Notes under the pieces: generated by a model
Seen by the model: only the letters and a program-made list of their open reading frames with translations
Databases searched by the model: none
What the model was told of the DNA's origin: nothing
Part shown: one piece after another, positions 1 through 18,500 of the stretch
Position numbering within the stretch: position 1 is the stretch's first letter
Layout: every line of letters starts with the position of its first letter
Made by a program: the position numbers and the translations under genes
NCBI RefSeq assembly: GCF_000400465.1
Contig: NW_008806280.1
Location: forward strand, 60,001 to 92,000
DNA from: Wallemia ichthyophaga EXF-994
Taxonomy: Eukaryota; Fungi; Basidiomycota
Direction of reading: 5' to 3'
Length of the DNA: 32,000 nucleotides

Positions 1-36
1 TTTGCAATTTAGACCCGCTGCTCATCCAGCACCTAG

Positions 37-927
37 ACGCCAGCGAAACTCTCAACAACGGAAATTGTGATTTTGATCTTCTTTGTGAGTTGGGGATAGT
101 TTATAGTGCCCAATCTCAACCGCTGAAAGTCCACGCTGTACACCATCAACATTGCTGTGTCCAATCTGTCACTCAGTCTTGTCACAGTACCTGTTCACCA
201 GGTGGGCATTTGATTGTTTATCGGGGTTAATCTTACGTTAGCTCAGATTATAAGGTCACTAGGACCTCTCTTCACCATGGCACTAGCTGTGCCTATCCTC
301 GGATCTAAATTCTCAATACCCAAACTAGTGTCTTTGTTACCAGTAATCGCCGGTATCGCTCTGACGACATATGGCGAGATTAGCTTTACAGCACTCGGTC
401 TGTTCCTCACATTCGCGGGTACAATCTTAGCAGCTTTCAAGACAGTCGTCACCAACTTGATGCAAACTGGTCAGCGATTCCAAATGCATCCTCTCGACTT
501 ACTCCATTGGCTGTCTCCATTGGCGTTGGCGCAGTGTATCGCTTATGCCGTCTACACAGGCGAGTACTTTGAAGTATACAAGGATCTCTGGCCGATGCAT
601 AACGTCTACAAGACTATCTTGGTGATTGCACTAAATGGTGCCCTTGCTTTCGGATTGAATGTTGTATCTTTCGTGTCGAATAAGAAGGTCGGACCACTTA
701 CCATCTCAGTCGCTGCGAATATCAAGCAGGTACTCACTGTTGTTCTGTCTTTCTTCTTTTTTGAGTTGAGCGTTAGTCAAGTGGGCTTTGTGGGCATAGT
801 TTTAGCTTTGCTGGGAGGTGTGTGATGATCGTTTCAGGTGGTTTGCTTACTTGATTAACCTCCAACTACAGGTCTTTGGTATGGCAGAGTGGAGTATAAT
901 GACAAAAAACGCGCATTAACTTTGTAG
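37..927 (+). CDS. Triose-phosphate/nucleotide-sugar transporter family (TPT, SLC35E-like) protein, 5' end outside the window
   Basis: Exons 37-84, 130-201, 247-817, 872-927 (introns of 45, 45 and 54 nt) splice in frame to TPAKLSTTEIVILIFF-STLYTINIAVSNLSLSLVTVPVHQ-IIRSLGPLF...GG-LWYGRVEYNDKKRALTL*. Hydrophobic DMT-type helices and typical TPT motifs. Confidence 0.85.
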
Positions 928-995
928 ACCGCTTCTTACGCTCATGTACTATTAGTCTGTAGAATACAATAATTTATGTCTATGCTAAGGTGTGG

Positions 996-1963
996 CTACT
1001 GTTGAGCCAGCAACCAAGGTCTTTCATTCCAGAAGACGTCTTTGATAATGTCTACGTGCAATGTCTGTATGTCTCCGCGCGTGCCATCTATACCATCCTT
1101 GCGTATTTTTTCAATTCTTTTTTTTTCCTTGTAGGCACCATCCGATGGCACTTGAGGCAGTGAAGGAGGATCGCGCACCAGGACAGAACCTTTCTTGTAC
1201 ATTTCATTCAGCTGATTGTAGTTTATGCCGTAATCTTTGAACAGAATGTCATGCTTTTGAGATGAGACAGTGCCTTTCAACAGATTGTGTGCTTCCCTCT
1301 CTGTCTTCTTACCCTGCTGGACAATAGCCCAGAAGCAGGTGTTGTATAGGTTGTTTATATGTGCTGGGAGCGCTTTTAGTTTGAATATGTCAATAAACGC
1401 GCTTTAAAACCCACTATCGACTTGCCTCCAAGCGAAATAGTCGCGAACGTGTATAGTGAGGGGGTAAGTGATAATTCTACCGTCAAAAATGGGTGGATAA
1501 GCGAGTGGAATACTAAAGTGTCTGCTCCAATTGTACATAAAAGCTGAAGAAAACGCAGAAACAACCTGAGTCACTATCTTTGCTTTACGGCGATCATAGA
1601 TATGTGATTGAGGGCGCAAAAGGAAGCTTTTCGAGTGTGATTGTGAGTTTGGGTGCGAGGATTACTGGCATATTGACCCACCTATATTCATCACTCTCCC
1701 CGAAAGCCAAAATTACATCGTGGAGCTGCTGCATAACGAATTGAGCAGCGTCATTCATGCATTCTAAGGCTCGGCTATCATTTGGTTTCCTGAAATTATG
1801 TATATCGCTGAATCTAATTGCATTTTAGAGCGAATTGGAGTGCAAGATTGCTGTCACACCTGTGGAAGCTGTGACCATCTATTCTCACAACTGAGAAAGT
1901 ACTCGGGATCAATCTGTCGTGTTCCTCGAACTCCCGTACGTATCCGAATCTTGAGTTGGCCAT
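996..1963 (-). CDS. THG1: tRNA(His) guanylyltransferase Thg1, ~271 aa
   Basis: Exons 1963-1860, 1813-1682, 1626-1415, 1363-996. Contains MANSRFGYVREFE, VVRIDGHSFHRFS, FGESDEYSF and WRQVDTHINNLYNT, with both catalytic Asp motifs. Confidence 0.95.
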
Positions 1964-2126
1964 GTTGGTTGAAATAAGAAGAACATCCGAGTGGGTTAAC
2001 ATTTTAATCCTTTAAAGGAAAACCCTCAAATCCCCTGAGATTCGTCTAAAAATTAAATTTCTAAATTCAGAAATTAACCGTCATAAGCTTATCTTTCCAA
2101 CGACGACGGCGAGAAGAACTACGAAG

Positions 2127-5100
2127 ATGGATGATGACCATCCAATTCCACAGGCAGTATCAAATTTGAGGGATACGAATAAACGGTCTTCATCACAGCC
2201 TAGCAGCAGATCAGTCACTTTCTCAATTCGAGATAATGACGTTAATAATGTTGATAACGATAACGCTGTGGCAGATACAGACACTGAGGATGATTATGAT
2301 GATAATCACAGATACAGGCGCAGTCTCCGTTTCGAGGATGACCTTGATACAGGCGATGTTAATCACAATGATACCCCGGATCAGGACGACGCTTGCATGG
2401 GAAATCCGGAGAAAGTAAACGCTGATCTTGAAACGCAAGCAAAGGACACAGAACACGCGGAACCGCCACAACCACCATCACCTCGACAACCTAAATGGCA
2501 CAAATTCATTCAATGGAAGTACATTCGCTGGTTATATACAAATCACTCTTGGCATCACTTCAGACCTGTCATTAGAGCAAGTTTGGCTGCATGGCTTGGT
2601 CTTCTCCTTTTCCTCATTCAACCCGTCTTAGTCTTGATGGGCCAGGCTGCTTTCTATATCCTCGTTTGTGGTTTCTTGGCATCTCCACGTGATGCTATTT
2701 TACCAGACATTGAGCGTCAGATCATAAACCTAGTCTTTGTGTGCGCAGCCTGGGCTTGGTCAATAATCGGCCTTTCGATCGGTTTTGCAGGACGAGACGA
2801 AGCTCAGAACGAAGCTACAATGTCAGCCGTCCTTGAAGAAGCAAGCGCGATGAATAATTCTGATCTACAGCTATACATTCAACAGCAAGCTGTGGAAGGC
2901 CGGTTCATCCAAGCATCAACATCAGTCACAGCGGCCATCTTCCTTGCCTTCGGAAGTGGATTTTTCCTCTATCTTAAATCTAAACTATCACCACCACGCT
3001 ATGGAGTAGCCTGTGTGTTTTCGACAATCTGTCTGATCGTATCGTTGACACAAGGTCATACCGCTTACTCCCCCAATTACAAGATAGGATCGTATTTCGC
3101 TCTCCCTCTAGCATTACAGTCAGCAATCAATATTCTTTGCTCTATGTTCGTGCTACCTGTCACTGTCAACCACCAATTCTTGCTTGGATTACAGGCGGTA
3201 CTCCAACCGCTACAAAAGTTTACTCACGCAGAAACTGATTTGTTGGGCATTCCTGTCACGTCCGAGGATTGGATAGAAAGGGTAAGGTATCTCAAGACGC
3301 TCAACTCCCAATCCGTTCAAGCAATGATAGCGGTGCGTAGCAAGGACGCTCACGTCTTCCGTGAATACAGCTTCGGATTGTTGAGAGGCAGGGATTGTCA
3401 TGAGTTGTTGGAATTGATACGAAATGTCCACCTGCGTAGTGGTGGGTTTATCACTTTTAGCGAAGCTTTGTTGGTCGCGTTTCACAACAAACACATCTTA
3501 CAAGAAGCTGTAACACTAGCTGAGCCTGAAGATGTAGCGCAGAGTGCGGCATCTATTTACAGCCCCTCGAGAAACCCATCTCCCTTCTCATCTCAGCAAA
3601 ACACACCTAGGAGCTCAGTCGCTCTGTCGAGATACGATACTGGTGACTCGAGGGATGTTGACAGTCATCATTCAGCTTTGCACATCTTTGGTTCGCATAG
3701 TATAGGTACTCTCACAGAACTGCTGCACAAGTCGAAGAGGAAACATGTTGCACCAATTGGTGTCTTTGAATCCCAGAGATACATGGCGCTTGAGGAGCGT
3801 ATGAAATTCACTGATCAGGAGTTCGTGAGGGCACATTTTGCAATAGTCAGTGAACATTCGAGAGATCTTAACGATACCACGGCTGTTACTCTAGCACACG
3901 TCCAGAAGCAAATCGAGAGGGTTGATCGTGTTAGACTAGGATCGTGGCTTTTTCGTCGGCACGATTCTCCAGGCGAGGGTAACGCGATTATTGAGAATAT
4001 GGAGATTTGCGATAATCTCCGCCGCGCTATCACCAAATTCAAGACTGAGGATAGACTAGCAGTACTGAGAAACTACTCTCAGTTCTTCGATGGCTCGCAG
4101 CCACGCGCAAAAATACCTTACAGAGCTTTGTTTTGGAGCTTCAATTATCAGTACTACCTCCTCGGTTTCTCAGGTGCACTCCTAGAACTTGCCGAAAAAA
4201 TGTCCAATCTCGAAGCTAAGCGAAAAAAGCCTAGACTATGGATTCCTGAAGTGCATCTCTTTGGCTGGTTTGCTAGTAGCACCGAAAAGCATGGCGAAGA
4301 GGAAGAAGACGATGACGATCCCGAGCACATGGCAGATGTAATGGAAGTATACCCTCAATCGAGAGATCCCGACGTTCTAGCACCTTCGAATGTTTTTGAA
4401 AGATTTGGGTGGGTGTTTGTTTGATGCTAAGCTGATATATACTGAACGGACACCTTAAGATCAGTGTTATGGAAATTGTGGATGTTTGTTATGTCCAAAC
4501 AGTCTTTGTTTGCGCTCAAAACTGCGCTTCTGGTTGCCCTCGTTACGCTGCCTGCCTTCCTGAAAACCTCGGCAGGGTTTTACTATTACGAACGGGGATT
4601 ATGGGTCGCAATTATGGCCAATTTGACACACAGTCAACACCGAGTGAGTATTTGAGAGTTTTCACTTAGTTATAATGTCTGACGATTGGGTACAAAGGGT
4701 GATACTCTCTTCAATTGGTTCACGCGTCTGGTGTACTCTGTAGTCGGTATTTTCAGTGGTCTGCTGATATGGTAGGTAGTTGTTTGTTCATTTCTCAGTT
4801 GTTGACAAAGTGTAATTTTCTCATTAGGACAATAGCAGCTCAAAAAGGAACAGGTAATCCATACGCTGTCGGCGCGACGTGCGCAGTAGCATTCCCGATT
4901 ATGTTCTACATAGTCATGTATTTCCCCGGTACGAATGTAGGATTGATGGTGTTAATGGTTTCTGTAGCTATGGTTTTGGGCTATAGCTGGCAAGACGCAC
5001 ACAATCCATCGCTTGTGAATGTCGGATGGGGATGGGATCTAGCTTGGAAGAGACTTGTTTTGGTAATCATTGGCGTTACAGCTGCATTCGTTTTCGCATA

Positions 5101-10603: not shown

Positions 10604-11892
10604 TTGTTGCTTTGATGGTTCGAGTTTGAGCTTTGGAATCGATTTTGACCTTACTTTAGTCACTCGGTCTCGATGAGTCGAAACTTCCCCACCAATTTGA
10701 CAGAGATTATTGTGGCTATTTTTCAAATTTTTGCTTCTAATCTGGTAAATTCGGGTGTCTGCATCTTAATTAGCTTCTCCTCTTCTCTCCCCGCTCACTC
10801 CTTGTCCTCGCCGACACATTTTCTCTGCGAAAAATTTGAAAATCTCGGAGTATTTCTCGAGGTACGTGCTAGAATGGTCTGTGATGTGACAAGCGGGGAT
10901 AATTGTGCTGAGGCGGCCATTTCAGTGCACTCAAAGCACGTGCCACCCCACACCCATTTCTCGGCCGTCTCATAAATAACCTCCGACTAATCAGCTTATC
11001 CAATATCTTACACTATGCATAAATCCGCAGTTGACAAGCGTTGTAAATAATACATTATAAATCTTATATTTTTTACATTATATCTATTAAATTTATACAC
11101 GCAGCGCTATAAACGGTGTACTCCGCAATACCATAGACCATTCTACGCGCGACAGACGCACTACGCACTTTTCGCAGTCTAGTCCAATTTAATCTAGTCT
11201 ACTTGCACAGCTGTGGAGTCTCGAGTCTCGAGCATTCGACGCGCATCTGCATCTGTCTACGTGCATTGCGGTGCTGCTCTAAAATTAATAAATTGGACCG
11301 TGGACTACCTACCACCCAAGTACCTCCCAAGTATCAACCTCATGCCACCTCTCGGCTGCATCTTCTCGCCCGCGCATGCCCTCGCATGAACCTCGCATAT
11401 GCCGAAAAGAGTCTGACGACAAGTTTCACACCCGTTCAACTCCCCGGCACCGCAGCTCTGCATGATGTGTGTAATCTGCGTGACTCATTTTGTCTGCTGA
11501 CCGTCTCGTTACGTGGCATTACATTGCATTTCTCGCCTGAAACTATCCGATTTGTGCGTCGCGCGTGTCGCATTTCGCCTATCGCCTTCGCATTTCGCAT
11601 CGCCCTTGGCCCGTCGCGTATCTACCCCGCCTCAGCTGATTTGCTTCTTCGCCTTGCGTCCCCGAGACAATCACAATCACACAATTGATAACTCGGGCAA
11701 GGCGATAATGATAGTGATGGCAAGTGGCAGGTGGCTGATGGAAATACCTGGAGCACATATGACCACGTTGATTAGAAATTAAACAGCACAAAACACAACA
11801 TGTCATTCCATATGCACTATATATATTCTCTTATTTAGCGTGTACACGCTCATCCACTCCCTCACAAAAGCTCCACCGCTCCACCTCCACAC

Positions 11893-12433
11893 CTAGAAAT
11901 TGAGTGATCGCAGATAATCGGCAAGCTCCTCGACAACCTTAGTCGCTTCGCCTGGGAGTACAGGAGCGTCGTATTCCGTGACGAGGATCGCCTGTACAGT
12001 GCGCACGATAACGCATCCATTAGGCTGTAATTGTGTCAATGTGGGCCATGACGTTCATGACGTTGCCACGGCACACTCACCCCCTTCTTCCCATACACCT
12101 TCCCCTCGTCAGCCTGAAGAGTGAAGAATTTCTGTCCATTGAGCTTGATGCCTGAAGCCTGCGTGGCTTCAGAGTTGGAGAAAGACCCAATGATCGCTCT
12201 CTGCTCTTCCGGAGTGAGCTGGAGGTTGTGTTAGAATGTACATGCACACTAAACTCCCAGCCCCGATCGCTACTCACTTGGTAACCTGCACTTATCGCCC
12301 ATATCCCGCCGTTCACTCCCATGATCGCGGCTCTGGATACCTTTTGCGTGCCGACAAGATTTCCATCTACGTATTCTGCGCTGCTTCAGTTGGCTCATAA
12401 ACACTCCCCTTCACACTCACGCTGCCACGACAT
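11893..12433 (-). CDS. PFY1: Profilin (copy P1, intact), 126 aa
   Basis: Exons 12433-12421, 12375-12278, 12218-12081, 12024-11893. MSWQQYVDGNLVGTQKVSRAAIMGVNGGIWAISAGYQLTPEEQ...SGIKLNGQKFFTLQADEGKVYGKKGPNGCVIVRTVQAILV...PGEATKVVEELADYLRSLNF*. Confidence 0.97.
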
Positions 12434-12594
12434 TTCTACTGTGGTATATGTGGTGGTTCAACCAAACGACGCACTCCAAGTGGGCCAAATGAGTCAAAAT
12501 TTACTGTAAGCACACGATAGTATTTATGGCTGCTTGTTTTGCTCTATTTGAACCCTTCTTTGTCGCACACATCGTTTTACATGTACGTCACTCA

Positions 12595-12624
12595 CTGCCA
12601 CTGCAACTGCAACTGCAACTGCAA
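12595..12624 (+). repeat. Hexanucleotide microsatellite (CTGCAA)x4 plus one variant unit
   Basis: ctgcca ctgcaa ctgcaa ctgcaa ctgcaa, upstream of profilin P1. Confidence 0.9.
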
Positions 12625-12673
12625 AATGGACATGTCAATGTAAATTTATAAGCTTATTCGTTGTACGCAACTA

Positions 12674-12960
12674 TTAGCCTGATCTTAACAAATTATCTCC
12701 TAGCCTCTTGACTGGGATGTTTGATTCAATCGAGTTTTGGATTTTGTCGTGTACAGCTATGACTATCACATTTTTATAGCGCGTCATTTTACTTCCAATT
12801 CTATCCTAAAATTAGTCAGCCTTAACTTTACTGTGTTAACTTCACCTACACGTGTACGTCCGTAAACCGATTTCCCAAAAAAACGAGACAGTTAATTTCG
12901 TACACCATTGAGCCTGTCGGTAGTACAATAAAAATCCTTATTCATCGAATAATATCTCAA
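12674..12960 (-). pseudogene. Profilin paralog fragment P2 (exons 3-4 only)
   Basis: RLNGVRN*LSRFFGKSVYGRTR|GTAGGT, a 44-nt intron (12849-12806), then an open exon ending VKRLGDNLLRSG*. Same intron position and phase as P1. Confidence 0.75.
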
Positions 12961-12978
12961 TCGTGAACTAACTACATT

Positions 12979-13498
12979 CTACTTTCCCAATCCTATAAAA
13001 AGACTACCATACTATCCAATATCGCGATGCTGTTACCGGGTTGTTATTGGTTAGACGTATTCCGCTATAACTACAATTGTGTTACAGGTCTTAATCACAC
13101 ACACATCGCGCTATTGATTCGTCAATGATCGATCATCGATCATTCACGGACAAGGATACCCACTCCGTCCCTGCCTAGCACGCTGTCTTCTTCAGCCCTC
13201 CTAATTCCGAATTTGCTTCCACTAAGCATGAAACCGTTTTGATATATTTCATCTGGGTTGCGGAATGACTTCAGGGTTTTTTCTGCTCTGTCTCGTTGAA
13301 CTGAGAAGGCGTTAACGGGTACACGTTGCTTGATCAAACGCCACCATTCGTCTCGAATCCCGGACTTGAATCCAAAGTACCTTCATACTTACTAACAATC
13401 GCTGATCTTGCTACATGCCCCGATACAGCAATAATTTGGCCTAAATATGCTAATTTGTGTTAATCGTGTTTAACTATACACTTACACTGCCACGACAT
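12979..13498 (-). pseudogene. Divergent profilin paralog P3, C-terminally disrupted
   Basis: ATG TCG TGG CAG T|GTAAGT (MSWQSY). Exons 13449-13345 and 13300-13164 are open. Exon 4 has a TAA at 13053-13051 and two 1-nt indels before the ancestral end FIGLGK* (12981-12979). Confidence 0.8.
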
Positions 13499-13650
13499 GC
13501 TTGTTTTGCGAAAATTTTCCTACAATCAAAGCGAAATTCACTTAACATTGAAACTTTACGAGCAGCTGGCTGAACACTTAATTGAAAATTTCATCAGCCT
13601 CACACACCAATCTATGTACTATTTATATCGCAAAAATGTAACAAACTTAT

Positions 13651-14177
13651 TCAATAACGCACCAATTTCTCAACCAGATCCGATACATATCCTTCAACTG
13701 TACCGATCTTTGCTTCTTCGGTGAAAAATGCGATAATATTCACGTTATCCGACGACGAAATGAGGCAAAATTCATGCTTTCCTTAAAAATAATCAGCGTT
13801 GACGTGGTATTGTTAGAAAACCCTACAGTCTGGCAAATTCCGAGCAACGTCAGCTTGAATAGATGAAGTGAAACTTCCTCTCCATTAATCTTGATAGAGC
13901 GTAATATATTTGAAAATTGAATCGATGGAAAAGTGCGTAACTAGTTTTTGATCTTCTCCACTTATTTATGCTAGTTATTAACGTATTGAGATTGCTCAAA
14001 CATCATTAAACACCTCAAATTCCGAACTGGAAGCCAATTGCCTCCATCATACTTAATAATAGTTGCATCTTTTATGAGGGAATACACGAGTTTCTCAACC
14101 TTATCCATTCCATCTTAGTCTTCGTACTAAAATCTTCAAGATACACACTAACACTACCAATCAACTCCTTCAGACAT
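13651..14177 (-). pseudogene. Divergent profilin paralog P4
   Basis: MSEGVDW*|GTTAGT; DATIIKYDGGNW(-1)ASSSEFE|GT; ISGEDQKLVTHF; IKING; open last exon HEFCLISSSDNVNIIAFFTEEAKIGTVEGYVSDLVEKLVRY*, which is colinear with P1 exon 4. Confidence 0.7.
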
Positions 14178-14249
14178 GATTGTTATTAATAATCGTCAAT
14201 GAACCAGTTGCGTGTCTCATGACGGATTAAGTTGAATTGAATAATTCAA

Positions 14250-14575
14250 GTTTTGAATGTGAAACTAGGTGAAACGCACCATGAATCACTCCAGTTGCAT
14301 CTCCTCGAACAACTCCTCGTATACGTCAATTGTCACAGCTAAGACAATGAACATAACCTATTCAGAGCGCAATTATACATTCATTTGCACTCTCAAATGA
14401 AACAGCGATAACTTTACAGGATATCCAACACCTACACCTCCCCGTCCGTAAAAAATTCATAAATAGATAGGTGTATCACTTTAAGCCATCGAGCCTGATT
14501 GTAGATGCCATTGTAAATTCAAAGTTGTCTTTGAATGGGATCATTGTGGATTTTGTTCATTTTCTATCTGATCTG
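14250..14575 (-). pseudogene. Profilin paralog fragment P5 (exons 3-4, decayed)
   Basis: ASTIRLDGLK*YT (P1: ASGIKLNGQKFFT), YGRGG|GTAGGT (P1: YGKKG|), ANECII, and VVRGDATGVIH (P1: VLPGEATKVVE). Confidence 0.6.
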
Positions 14576-14590
14576 AGAACAGAATCAACT

Positions 14591-15464
14591 TTAAACTCGA
14601 TTAATTGAAACAATTTTAACGTTACAAACAGGGCAATTCAAGTAGCTGCTCAAATAGCCCACTAAACACGCATAATCGTATACGTGTCCACATTGCGCTG
14701 CATACGAAACTCCGATATCGTTATTACAGCACACAGCACACCGACTAACACCATCGCCGTGCTCTTGCGTTACAGGCAGGGTTCTACGAGGTGTGAGTGT
14801 GCTCCTGCTTGTATAAACGCTGTAAACGAATTCCTGTGTTGTAATAATTCAGCATTGCACCTCACCCTGCCTTGTCGAATAGATACGCACAGTCATTACA
14901 CTCCAGACTAGCTGCCGCTGCGTGAATTCGAGGTTGATGTTGGTGACGCACCCGCTCCCCTCCACTCCCAATCCCAGCATTCTCTCGCTCAGATTCGCAT
15001 AGCGTCCACCGGCAACAAAGACAAGCCAATTCGCAAGCCCTGCTGCATCGGCCACCCTCTCTGCAACTTCCAGTAGTGACGCTAGACGGCGCTTGACGTG
15101 GTATCTAGATAGACTGCTCCAGTCCTCCACTGCCACCTTGTCCTTCAGCTTTCGGTGTGCGTATGGGATTATAACACGAGTCATGACATAGAGAAGACTG
15201 GAAATTGTGTTTAAATTAGTGTATTTGAGCAAATGCAGATCCATTCCGTATATGCTCTTGAACGCTCGCAGATATTTCCACATGTAAACACTCCGTATCA
15301 ACGTCGTTATCTCATCTGCGTTGTTCATCTCGAAACCATTGAGCTGAGTGCTAGCCAATAAAGACACTCACCCCTAACACCCTCAGCGCTTCAACCACAG
15401 GTCGACTCAGTCCTCGCACCACCTCCTCGTCTAGCTCCTGTCCATCTAATCGCTGCACCCTCAT
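14591..15464 (-). CDS. PEX2: Peroxisomal RING peroxin Pex2, ~257 aa
   Basis: Exons 15464-15372, 15328-14891, 14833-14591. MRVQRLDGQELDEEV, WLVFVAGGRYANLSERMLGL, NLEFTQRQLVWSVMT-EF, and a C-terminal RING CAVC...CGHVYDYAC...CPVC. The first acceptor is uncertain (GAG). Confidence 0.85.
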
Positions 15465-15559
15465 GACGCAAGTTTGAGAAACGAAATAAATGTATTTACA
15501 TTAAATTAGATGGAAATTTATTACTAGTCATAATTAAGCTAAATGAATGCCTGTTTATT

Positions 15560-18500
15560 TCATGCAAACCCGAATCCTGTATTGCCCTCGTGGATTGCCG
15601 TCAATATCTGTCTGCGAAGTGCCTCGTACGACGAATATGGTCCTAAATCTAGTTGATTGACTATACCTTTGATTAGTAAAGTAAATGTAGAAATCCAACA
15701 AAACTCACAGCATGTGTGTGCAGCAGGCAGTCTATCTTCTGCACCGTACGCCTTGTGAATGTTAAATCTCTGTGTGCCTTGTGATCCCTGTAGTGCACCA
15801 AATCCTTCGAGCGGTACACGAGATGAACCAGTTGCAAACTGCAAGAACGATGCTTTCTGTGTTGAGTCGAATGACCTCAGCACCCTCCAGAACCAACCGA
15901 TCACTGGATCTGAAGGTGTGAATCCATGGTAGTCTGTCTGGTTCTTCCACGCATCGACATCAATATCAGGTAAACCAGAAATTAACAACTCCAATTCGTT
16001 CTCAGAGAATATCTTAACCAGGTCTTTCGGTATTATCTCGTGGAATCCTTCCAAGAAGCACTGAATCTGTCTCTCGATCGCTGTCGTGAGGCGGAACTCA
16101 GTTACAAGCTTGACATATTCCTTCTTGTTCTGGTCTGTTACCGGTATGTTCCTGCCGTTTGGAATTAAATCTATGATGTTCACTACACCGAACTCATCAT
16201 CCTCGATCGAGAACGTCAACTCGAGCACACCCTCCAAGCTATTCTCCAACATCCAGACGAGTGAGTTGTAGTAACTCAAATCAACACTCTCCAAATCCTT
16301 AAAGTCTACCTGTCTGCCCAGCATATGCTTGTAGAACGACCTCGTAAAGTACGCATCCAACAGTCTACCATCGTAGATAGCTTTACCAATGATACGTCCA
16401 ACAAACTTGAAGAAGTCCAAATGATGCTCATTTACGTACGACGCTCTATTTGGTTGATACGTCAATCTATCGGCATCACATGGCTGGAATAGTGCGTAAT
16501 TTGGATTAAACATCTGTTGGGCGAGTACTTGGAACCATTCACGGGCAACTCCACCTGCATCGACACCCTCTTCTCCGTGGAACTTGACTGACAACTTACC
16601 ATACTTAATCTCATCTCCAGACTTCCTCTGCAGGTACTGGAATGAGTCTGCGAAAACGTGCGAGCGACGGACGTTGACGTGCAGAGTTGGATATGTCTCT
16701 CCGCGCTTCCTTGCTCTCAGGCGCTGCATAAAGAAGCTTCTCTTGTTGTCAAACTCGAGAATGCGAGGGTTTTGTACGAGAAGTGAGAATGATCCACTCA
16801 TAAGTGCTGGATTATTGCGAACCATGATATTGATGATTTTCCTGTGCTCCTCTGTGAAGTCTATGAAAATATCCTCGATGCTCTCATTCGCTGATGGGGA
16901 TACTGGTGATCCCGTCATGCGCTTTGTTCTGAGTGCTTCTGTTTGTGGATTAACATACTTGCAAACCACCATAAGTGACTCGATGAGAGGTAAGAGAACG
17001 GTAGCGATATGTGTCATTTGCTCATTCTCTTCAATGATCTTGAGGTTTTCTGAGAGTTTTTGCCACACAGAACCAAACTAGATGTGTTGTTAGTTAACCA
17101 CCTCATGCACAAGTCAACACCTACGTTAAATGAATCGTAAATAGCGTTCACCTTCAACTCATTTGTCTTAGCCTCTTCTTGCGTTGCAGCAGGTGGCTCA
17201 GCAGTTGTTTGCGGTTGCTGGTTGATATCTTCTCTCATCAAAGAGCCAAGCACTTGACGAAGCGAAGATGGCCTTTCTTCACCAGATTGCTCACTATTTT
17301 CGCTCATCTCGCTAGATTGACCGAACATGTAATCCACAGTCTTCAACACTCTAAGCAGACGCGCCTGCAGTGATGAAGCTGGGAGGAACTTCTCCATCGT
17401 TCCAGCAGAAACATCGTCGCTCTTTTCTGCATTTCTGAGTGCATCACCGAGCTCAACAAGTTCACCGTTGAGCTGCTGACCAAAGTCTTGCGCTTTCACC
17501 TTTAACTCAGCCGCAATAACATCCTTTGCGTCTGGTACAAAGCTCAAGTTCTGGATCAGACTTAGTGTCTGCTGGAACGTTTTGCTGGTGCATTCGCCGA
17601 TCGTAAGTATGTTGACGACGTATTTGAGAACATGAGTAGGAATCTGAGGAGCAGTCTTTAGTCCCTCATCCTCCTTCTCATCTTCGGTCTTCTTGTTCTC
17701 GCCCTCCTTCTCTTTAGGACGAGGTGTAACGTTCGCGTCAGCTGGCTGTTGCTGAGGCTGCTCTTGCTGCTGTTCCTGAGTACCACTAGCTTCTGGTTTC
17801 TCGTTCTTGTCATCCTTCCTAAGCGTTGACAGTGGCTTTGTGACCGTCGCCAACAGAGTGGTAAACGTATCCATCATCATCTGCGTTTTGAAAACGGTTG
17901 GGCGATCAAGCAAACTCATCAACAGCACGATCGGGAACTTAACTGGTACTGTCTGCTTTTCCTTACCCTTGCTCTTCTTCGATGGTCTCGACCTCATGCT
18001 GCTTGAGAGATCGTGTTCAGTGAGGAAGAATGTCGAAGCGGCTGAGTTGCTGGAGACGAGAGTAGTGAGTGTCTCGAAGCAACGTTGGGCAAGCAGGTTT
18101 GGAATGGTCTCTGGAGGGATCTGCAGCAATATTGGACTAGCTGGCGTTTCTTGCGTGTGCTTGCGTTTGCTAGACACCTTACTGGTAGGAGTTGAAAGAG
18201 GTGTGGAGGCAGATGGCTTAGTTCCTTTCAAAGTCAATTGAGACAAGCTACGATCAACTGCTGGCAAGTCACCCGTACCTTCTTGCAAGATGTTCAGCAA
18301 CAACAACAACAGGTCGTTTCTAGAGCGAGAGTTTTCGATAAGCTGCGGTAATTGTTAGATGATAGGGAATCTTGTACAGATCTACCCACATTGGCAAGAA
18401 TCTTGAACAAGACCGATTTCTTGATTAGGTTTGGATAGAAAAGCAAACGTATCAAGATGGCCAATCCGCTCTTGTCGAGAAGCTGTATGGCATCCTTCTG

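Follow-up and report, generated by a model that had tools for sequence, protein, structure and literature searches.

Profilin is normally a single-copy and strongly conserved gene in fungi. We have analysed a 32,000-nucleotide (nt) stretch of the genome of Wallemia ichthyophaga EXF-994, an extremely salt-loving fungus (contig NW_008806280.1, positions 60,001 to 92,000; hereafter the window). Read along the minus strand, on which every gene of the stretch lies, the locus of interest consists of the C-terminal end of a HECT ligase gene (from 15560), PEX2, a 2.1-kb block, an intact profilin gene that we call P1, and a cyclin gene (10726-9866). None of six annotated assemblies has a gene call within the 2.1-kb block. 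This block, which separates the PEX2 stop (14591) from P1 (12433-11893), holds four further profilin-derived units, P2 to P5. Here we argue that the block (12472-14588) consists, in all probability, of profilin gene copies that arose by tandem duplication at the DNA level and have since been pseudogenised, seen so far only in the W. ichthyophaga lineage.

Over 6.4 kb the window matches both the reference assembly GCA_000400465.1 and one re-sequenced assembly without a difference. Since eight independent assemblies carry the block, the array is no artefact of assembly. All W. ichthyophaga haplotypes examined have the block, with extra strain-specific lesions.

P1 and the four units upstream of it

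P1 has four exons separated by introns of 45, 59 and 56 nt, with exon junctions at MSWQ+C, ..GYQ, LTPEE..GKKG and PNGC..LNF, and encodes a product of 126 amino acids. The spliced product is 100% identical to W. ichthyophaga profilin and 75% identical to W. mellicola profilin, and scores 153.5 bits against the Pfam profilin family PF00235, well above the gathering score of 25 bits. P1 is thus a typical member of the canonical fungal profilins (S. cerevisiae Pfy1, S. pombe Cdc3), with 60-75% identity to basidiomycete profilins, and it is the sole gene of the array. Its intron 3 (12080-12025) contains a tandem 9-nt duplication (AACGTCATG twice) that is not found in the sister species described below.

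Two of the units are full-length. P3 begins with exon 1 ATGTCGTGGCAGT (MSWQ+T) and a GTAAGT donor, giving a phase-1 exon 1 like that of P1, and is colinear with profilin through exons 2-4. Its intron 3 is 53 nt long, and its intron 2 has shrunk to an unspliceable 36-nt relic between exons 2 and 3 that holds an in-frame TGA (13334). In the window strain P3 carries three stops and two frameshifts in total. P4 is nearly as long as P1. Its exon 1 reads ATGTCT, a 12-nt insert and TGG TAG T before a GTTAGT donor, codon 8 having changed from CAG to TAG, and its three GT..AG introns lie at profilin positions, all three with the disfavoured acceptor AAG. Intron 2 keeps its donor at the homologous position, where deletion of 1 nt from exon 2 has left it in phase 2. 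As we read the alignment, this deletion is offset by an acceptor 5 nt downstream, the ancestral AG having become AA, and a +5/-5 indel pair restores the frame within exon 3. P4 in the window strain has one stop and one frameshift. In both P3 and P4, introns 1 and 3 occupy the same positions as the P1 introns (phase 1 after MSWQ plus 1 nt, and phase 0 after YGKKG).

The other two units are truncated. P2 and P5 both lack exons 1 and 2 and the first 8-10 or so codons of exon 3, and keep the distal two thirds of exon 3. P2 directly adjoins the 3' end of P3; its part of exon 3 holds one in-frame TGA, its intron 3 is 44 nt (GTAGGT...TTTTAG), and its exon 4 is open for 43 codons plus a stop. P5, which begins about 35 nt past the PEX2 stop, likewise has an intron 3 of 44 nt (GTAGGT...TTTGAG), with a TGA and a T-run frameshift in its part of exon 3 and two TGA in exon 4. 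Apart from the truncation, the lesions in the window strain are therefore one stop in P2, and three stops and one frameshift in P5. Exon lengths and intron positions are conserved in the array, as had been predicted for the exon lengths, but P2 and P5 are not whole units. None of P2-P5 in the window retains an uninterrupted frame of about 125 amino acids with N- and C-terminal helices.

Table 1. Coordinates of P1, the profilin-derived units and the adjoining features in the window.
Feature	Position	Strand	Parts and remarks
P1	11893-12433	minus	exons 12433-12421, 12375-12278, 12218-12081, 12024-11893
P2	12674-12969	minus	partial exon 3 12969-12850, intron 3, exon 4 12805-12674
P3	12993-13498	minus	exon 1 13498-13486; exon 2-3 region 13447-13164; exon 4 13110-12993
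P4	13651-14177	minus	exons 14177-14154, 14111-14014, 13961-13827, 13776-13651
P5	14254-14556	minus	partial exon 3 14556-14436, intron 3, exon 4 14391-14254
PEX2 last (RING) exon	14734-14591	minus	stop 14593-14591, upstream boundary of the inserted block
P2-P1 spacer	12434-12673	minus	last ~38 nt (12471-12434) homologous to the spacer between PEX2 and profilin in the sister species
P4-P3 spacer	13499-13650	minus	3' ~40 nt weakly like the spacer upstream of P1, read by eye

Relationship of the units to the profilin gene

For comparison with a close relative we used L013, a 55.7-kb Logan contig (SRR25399871) which, from its sequence, is taken to be that of a sister Wallemia species. Its profilin is around 89% identical to P1 (112/126 residues), and its identity to the window is 91% in HECT, 82-85% in the PEX2 exons and 88% in the cyclin.

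As the original prediction had claimed, four same-strand units lie upstream of P1, within a few bases of the coordinates given for them, and share a phase-0 intron after the equivalent of VYGKKG. Each of the motifs quoted for them is followed by a GT donor and an intron of 44-56 nt at the site of the phase-0 intron 3 of P1 (SVYGRTR/GTAGGT, VLGRDG/GTGGGT, LLGICQT/GTAGGG and FYGRGG/GTAGGT). P3 is readily recognised as a profilin, its lesion-bridged translation scoring 64.5-71.3 bits against PF00235. A spliced alignment tolerant of frameshifts and introns, with dinucleotide shuffles as the null, gave P3 a score of 123 as against 27 +/- 4.5 for the shuffles. With the same method the score of P4 was reached by 1/300 shuffles, that of P5 by 3/300 and that of P2 by 27/300.

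Alignments at the DNA level separate the remaining units from background. Local alignment to the L013 profilin gene gave scores of 54 for P4, 54 for P3, 44 for P5 and 32 for P2; none of 500 dinucleotide shuffles reached the score in the case of P4, P3 or P5, and three of 500 did so for P2. Real control windows (200 of 560 nt each, from the rest of the window) reached a maximum of 32 against the same gene. P4 also aligns to P1 (score 40) and to P3 (score 50), with 0/500 shuffles reaching either score. Comparison by hhalign with seven basidiomycete profilins placed all of P4 (P = 0.005), P5 (P = 0.006) and P2 (P = 0.025) in the correct register. Intron 3 itself is 71% identical to that of L013 in P4, 68% in P2 and 59% in P5. 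Between P2 and P5 blastn gives a match of 165 nt at 62% (E = 1e-9) that continues through intron 3; self-blastn of the array detected no other pair, and similarity between the spacers is too weak to order the duplications. At one site the array has the residue state LNG where other basidiomycetes carry LAG, a state specific to Wallemia or to W. ichthyophaga.

A different reading is that P2, P4 and P5 resemble profilin only by chance, as AT-rich spacer DNA might, and that P3 is the only true relic. The profile methods tell in its favour and count against common descent of all four units: they miss both P4 and P5, the bridged translations of which have no Pfam match, and P2 obtains 16.7 bits (E = 0.008, profile positions 59-126), below the gathering threshold. 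Similarly, in an exon-by-exon scan with a profilin hidden Markov model (HMM) built from seven sequences only the P3 exons stood out, the single-exon scores of P2, P4 and P5 (2-4.5 bits) being no better than those of the opposite strand, and the spliced-alignment score of P2 is the one that shuffles reach most often. Chance does not account, however, for alignments of P4 and P5 to an independent orthologue that are reached by no shuffle and by none of the 200 real windows, nor for the colinear hhalign register, the blastn match between P2 and P5, or introns at the same positions that are 59-71% identical to the intron of the orthologue. The P2-P5 match, the L013 alignments and the real-window controls together rule out chance similarity, to which we attach next to no probability.

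The homology therefore holds despite the silence of Pfam on P4 and P5, because it is seen at the level of DNA and gene structure, and on this footing the array is real and P2-P5 all descend from a profilin gene. The search with PF00235 that had been suggested as a check recovers P3 (64-71 bits), leaves P2 below threshold and says nothing of P4 and P5. That silence, together with a single profilin in relatives, had been named in the original prediction as grounds for abandoning it; both were found, literally so, and the DNA-level homology still stands.

Coding history and present state of the units

Five further haplotypes were compared with the window, from four annotated assemblies and two Logan assemblies, and are 98.8-99.3% identical to it. 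Three lesions are private to the reference strain, from which the window comes, and are read through by the five other haplotypes, namely the TGA at 13334 in P3, the loss of one A from an A-run at 13283 in P3, and an extra T at 13916 (+1 frameshift) in P4. In those haplotypes exons 2-3 of P3 form a single open frame of about 97 codons. Exons 2-4 of P4 are open in the non-reference L001, L002, L005, L006, L014 and L015, with 117 codons from an ATG at 14108, and strain L002 has a 9-nt in-frame deletion in exon 4 of P4. Other lesions are fixed across haplotypes: the CAG to TAG nonsense change in P4 exon 1 and, in P3, an early TAG and a frameshift with TAA after AEYV in exon 4. No intact copy of P2-P5 was seen in the other W. 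ichthyophaga strains examined, though the lesions there are fewer, and the least damaged allele is P4 with its one stop at codon 8.

The array contains 23 single-nucleotide polymorphisms (SNPs) and five indels in 1.9 kb (1.2% SNP). SNP density is 1.3% in the spacer between P1 and the cyclin, 0.9% in PEX2 and 0.4% in P1. Coding polymorphism in P4 amounts to some six non-synonymous changes to one synonymous, in addition to the 9-nt deletion and the frameshift. From these counts the within-species variation of the array looks neutral.

The divergence between units carries some signs of an earlier coding phase. In-frame stops number 1 in 127 codons in P4 and 2-3 in 143 in P3 (two in non-reference P3). 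When P1 was evolved neutrally in simulation to the observed nucleotide identity, 6-7 stops were expected, and the probability of one stop or fewer was 0.005-0.015. The stop-trinucleotide frequency of the block is 0.068, at which a run of 120 codons free of stops has a probability of 2e-4. Residues that are invariant in seven true basidiomycete profilins survive about twice as frequently as variable ones in P3 (44%, 23/52, versus 26%) and in P4 (37%, 18/49, versus 18%). The truncated units show no such excess, with 29% versus 30% in P2 and 25% versus 37% in P5. Because of the few stops, the excess of invariant residues and the frame-restoring indels of P4, we consider that P3 and P4 probably stayed translated while diverging fast, and that P2 and P5 were probably dead from birth. 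The earlier proposal that the copies diversified as functional proteins and decayed only later is thus plausible for P3 and P4 but not for P2 and P5. Identities by codon position (0.37-0.59 at positions 1 and 2, 0.30-0.40 at position 3) fit neutral or selected divergence alike. P1 and L013 are close to saturation at silent sites, with 24/60 four-fold sites identical, and the intergenic DNA of W. ichthyophaga and L013 is not alignable.

It is likely that all four units are pseudogenes today. Some points weigh against this account of an early coding phase followed by loss. The frames were picked by eye and from our own alignment, which favours open frames, and the stop-count test rests on a simple substitution model. 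P4, moreover, is open in five of six haplotypes, where an internal ATG begins a frame that crosses two GT..AG introns before reaching its stop, and an N-terminally shortened product might still be expressed in the non-reference strains, although we doubt it.

Taken further, these last observations would make P4 a working gene in most strains, encoding a diverged 117-residue protein of profilin fold with a new role, and the array a short-lived, fast-evolving profilin-fold family that arose after the species split. The open exons 2-4 with their GT..AG introns, the improbability of 120 stop-free codons at this composition, the enrichment of invariant profilin residues, and the fact that the sole other coding indel, the 9 nt missing in L002, keeps the frame are all consistent with such a gene. 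Yet the fixed TAG cuts off the ancestral start and with it the N-terminal helix, all three acceptors are AAG, polymorphism is predominantly non-synonymous and of intergenic density, and P4 has neither a gene model in any assembly nor a relative in protein searches. A single-sequence AlphaFold2 model of P4 was unconfident, with a predicted local distance difference test score (pLDDT) of 44, and is uninformative. We therefore regard a functioning P4 as improbable, and a family of this kind, with P4 expressed in most strains in a new role, as equally so. If it were true, P4 would act with its canonical N-terminal poly-proline site lost, and the private frameshift of the reference strain would make that strain a natural knock-out.

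A word-indexed search of 5.8 billion proteins gave no match to P4. HMMER with P4 on 1.84 billion representatives gave 33 matches, one of which was a 45-residue open reading frame of W. ichthyophaga itself; the remainder covered only P4 residues 13-31, in several repeats each, and were judged to be chance motif matches. This segment (14075-14019, KDATIIKYDGGNWLPVRNL) matches in multiple copies with E values down to 1e-10 and is a repeated motif elsewhere. Three of the matched proteins, when scanned with Pfam, proved to be bacterial beta-propeller or repeat proteins (Rax2-like, DUF6087, Por secretion tails). With all four units broken and no P4-like protein in public protein searches, the lineage-specific functional profilin family of the original prediction is not supported; and of its five-member gene array there remain tandem profilin-derived units, of which only P1 is a gene and two were already truncated at the 5' end when copied.

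Origin of the array and its surroundings

In both L013 and W. mellicola a single profilin gene directly follows PEX2, the distance from PEX2 stop to profilin ATG being about 52 nt and 44 nt, respectively. No profilin relics were found around the L013 profilin or, in W. mellicola, in the gap of 2.36 kb between profilin and cyclin and in that between PEX2 and profilin, and the suggestion that the copies may be intact in relatives finds no support here. Colinearity between W. ichthyophaga and L013 ends at 14589, just past the PEX2 stop, and resumes at 12471, 38 nt before the P1 ATG, and these two break points are 6 nt apart in L013. Hence the 2117-bp array (12472-14588) is a clean insertion. The segment made up of P1 and the 38 nt before it aligns to the profilin locus of L013 at 71%, and these break points make P1 the positional orthologue of the one profilin gene that the relatives have.

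The units are DNA-level tandem duplicates and not retrocopies because introns and upstream spacer were copied with them. None of P2-P5 aligns to the W. mellicola profilin gene, and they share states derived in the P1 lineage (G76, K77 and D102 in P2, D102 in P5 and E75 in P3); the duplications thus post-date the W. mellicola split. We propose that unequal crossing-over or replication slippage duplicated a unit of spacer plus profilin after that split and, on the simplest view, after the sister species too had separated. One copy would then have lost its 5' part. Because P2 and P5 are mutually closest and lack the same 5' portion, an already truncated copy would have been duplicated again, probably within a larger block, to give this pair. 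P4, P2 and P5, with their L013-like intron 3, would have left the lineage first and P3 last, P3 seeming the youngest copy because it has in common with P1 an intron 3 of CATTGAC type. P3 and P4 were probably translated for long, evolving fast under relaxed or diversifying selection, until P4 was knocked out by the glutamine-to-stop change at codon 8 and P3 by the frameshift and stop in exon 4. At present the whole block would drift neutrally with no protein role, leaving P1 as the sole source of profilin.

One matter tells against this course of events: in intron 3, P4, P2 and P5 resemble L013 (59-71%) more than P1 (39-42%), which would also fit a duplication before speciation followed by collapse in the sister. 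On that account the array dates from the ancestor shared by W. ichthyophaga and its sister, and unequal recombination later left the sister with one copy; the array would then be older than the species and not an innovation of W. ichthyophaga. The alignments of the units to the L013 gene are also better than those to P1, and tandem arrays collapse easily. However, an earlier origin calls for an extra and precise loss, restoring the PEX2-profilin spacing of some 50 nt that W. mellicola has, and P2, P3 and P5 share the P1-derived residues listed above. Furthermore, P1 intron 3 aligns worse to its orthologue than the introns of the relics do because of the 9-nt tandem duplication in P1, which accounts for its low similarity to them. 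We consider an origin before speciation rather unlikely, and prefer duplication within the W. ichthyophaga lineage.

The fast divergence of the units could in principle reflect repeat-induced point mutation (RIP), or the units could be retrocopies. The array has a GC content of 38% as against 52% in P1, and the stop in P4 arose by a CAG to TAG transition, as RIP would predict. Yet transversions exceed transitions (109 versus 65 in P4; transition/transversion ratio about 0.6), and the indices TpA/ApT = 0.79 and (CpA+TpG)/(ApC+GpT) = 1.14 resemble those found elsewhere in the window and lie outside the RIP range. RIP was rejected on these grounds, and a processed pseudogene or retrocopy was rejected on the introns kept in all four units; either is very improbable. 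GC to AT changes occurred at 0.43-0.49 of sites versus 0.23-0.29 for AT to GC, and the low GC of the block fits this general bias.

Multigene families of profilin with pseudogenes exist in plants, in Dictyostelium and Acanthamoeba, and in mammals (PFN1-4). The Wallemia array resembles them in its duplication and divergence and in the signs of a coding phase in its full-length copies, but it is tandem, restricted to one fungal species lineage, much more diverged (26-34% identity to its parent) and wholly dead, with no paralogue kept. With canonical fungal profilin P2-P5 have in common the gene origin, exon lengths and intron positions, and in P3 a match to the profile; they differ in being broken or 5'-truncated, with P4 and P5 outside the profile. 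A further parallel is provided by the non-processed (duplicated) pseudogene arrays left by birth-and-death evolution of tandem genes, since the Wallemia copies stand head-to-tail on the same strand, have introns and spacer copied, are in part truncated, and show segregating lesions with polymorphism at a neutral level. The difference is that these relics are conspicuous, being 2.1 kb of dead DNA in a compact genome (9.55 Mb, more than two thirds of it coding; PMC6738226).

The phenomenon is the ordinary birth-and-death of tandem duplicates and not a new functional family; what is unusual is that profilin is affected and that the relics survive in a compact genome. The locus records at least three tandem duplications, a probable fast-diverging coding phase and then loss, with lesions still segregating, and offers a compact natural example of birth-and-death where there is little spare DNA. 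Relics of this kind are missed by profile searches and gene callers and can be recovered by alignment to the gene of a sister species. A literature search found no paper linking Wallemia with profilin genes. In practical terms the results are of use only for annotation, with four pseudogenes to add and PEX2 to correct, and as a neutral-rate yardstick for Wallemia population genomics.

With regard to PEX2, the W. ichthyophaga models (190-195 amino acids) stop at the end of an open reading frame near 14849 and omit the conserved RING exon, which ends ..CPVCNVKIVSINRV* and is 85% identical to L013 and 53% to W. mellicola (tblastn). The W. mellicola model has 268 amino acids, and PEX2 of W. ichthyophaga is probably annotated as truncated in error. 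Some assemblies (L004-L006, locus 1-3772) carry a fused model of about 5080 amino acids that combines ATG5, Avl9, Rad52, the HECT ligase and PEX2, evidently an annotation artefact. In W. mellicola (L007-L012, 1759-7080) four to five extra genes lie between the HECT ligase and PEX2 (rotamase, Arf GTPase, an unnamed 181-residue product, GDPD and OBG GTPase), whereas HECT directly adjoins PEX2 in W. ichthyophaga (15470-15560) and L013 (8767-9147); this difference in synteny is unrelated to the array.

An Rfam scan of the whole window found no RNA family. The P2-P1 spacer contains an (ACTGCA)n hexanucleotide microsatellite at about 12597-12626, some 170 nt upstream of the P1 ATG; its length differs by 12 nt in strains L005 and L006. 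On the other side of P1, the spacer towards the cyclin (11065-11892, 0.83 kb) is not alignable with the sister species and has indels of 11 nt (11399), 9 nt (11804) and 2 nt (11005-11006) within W. ichthyophaga, and is useful as a local neutral yardstick.

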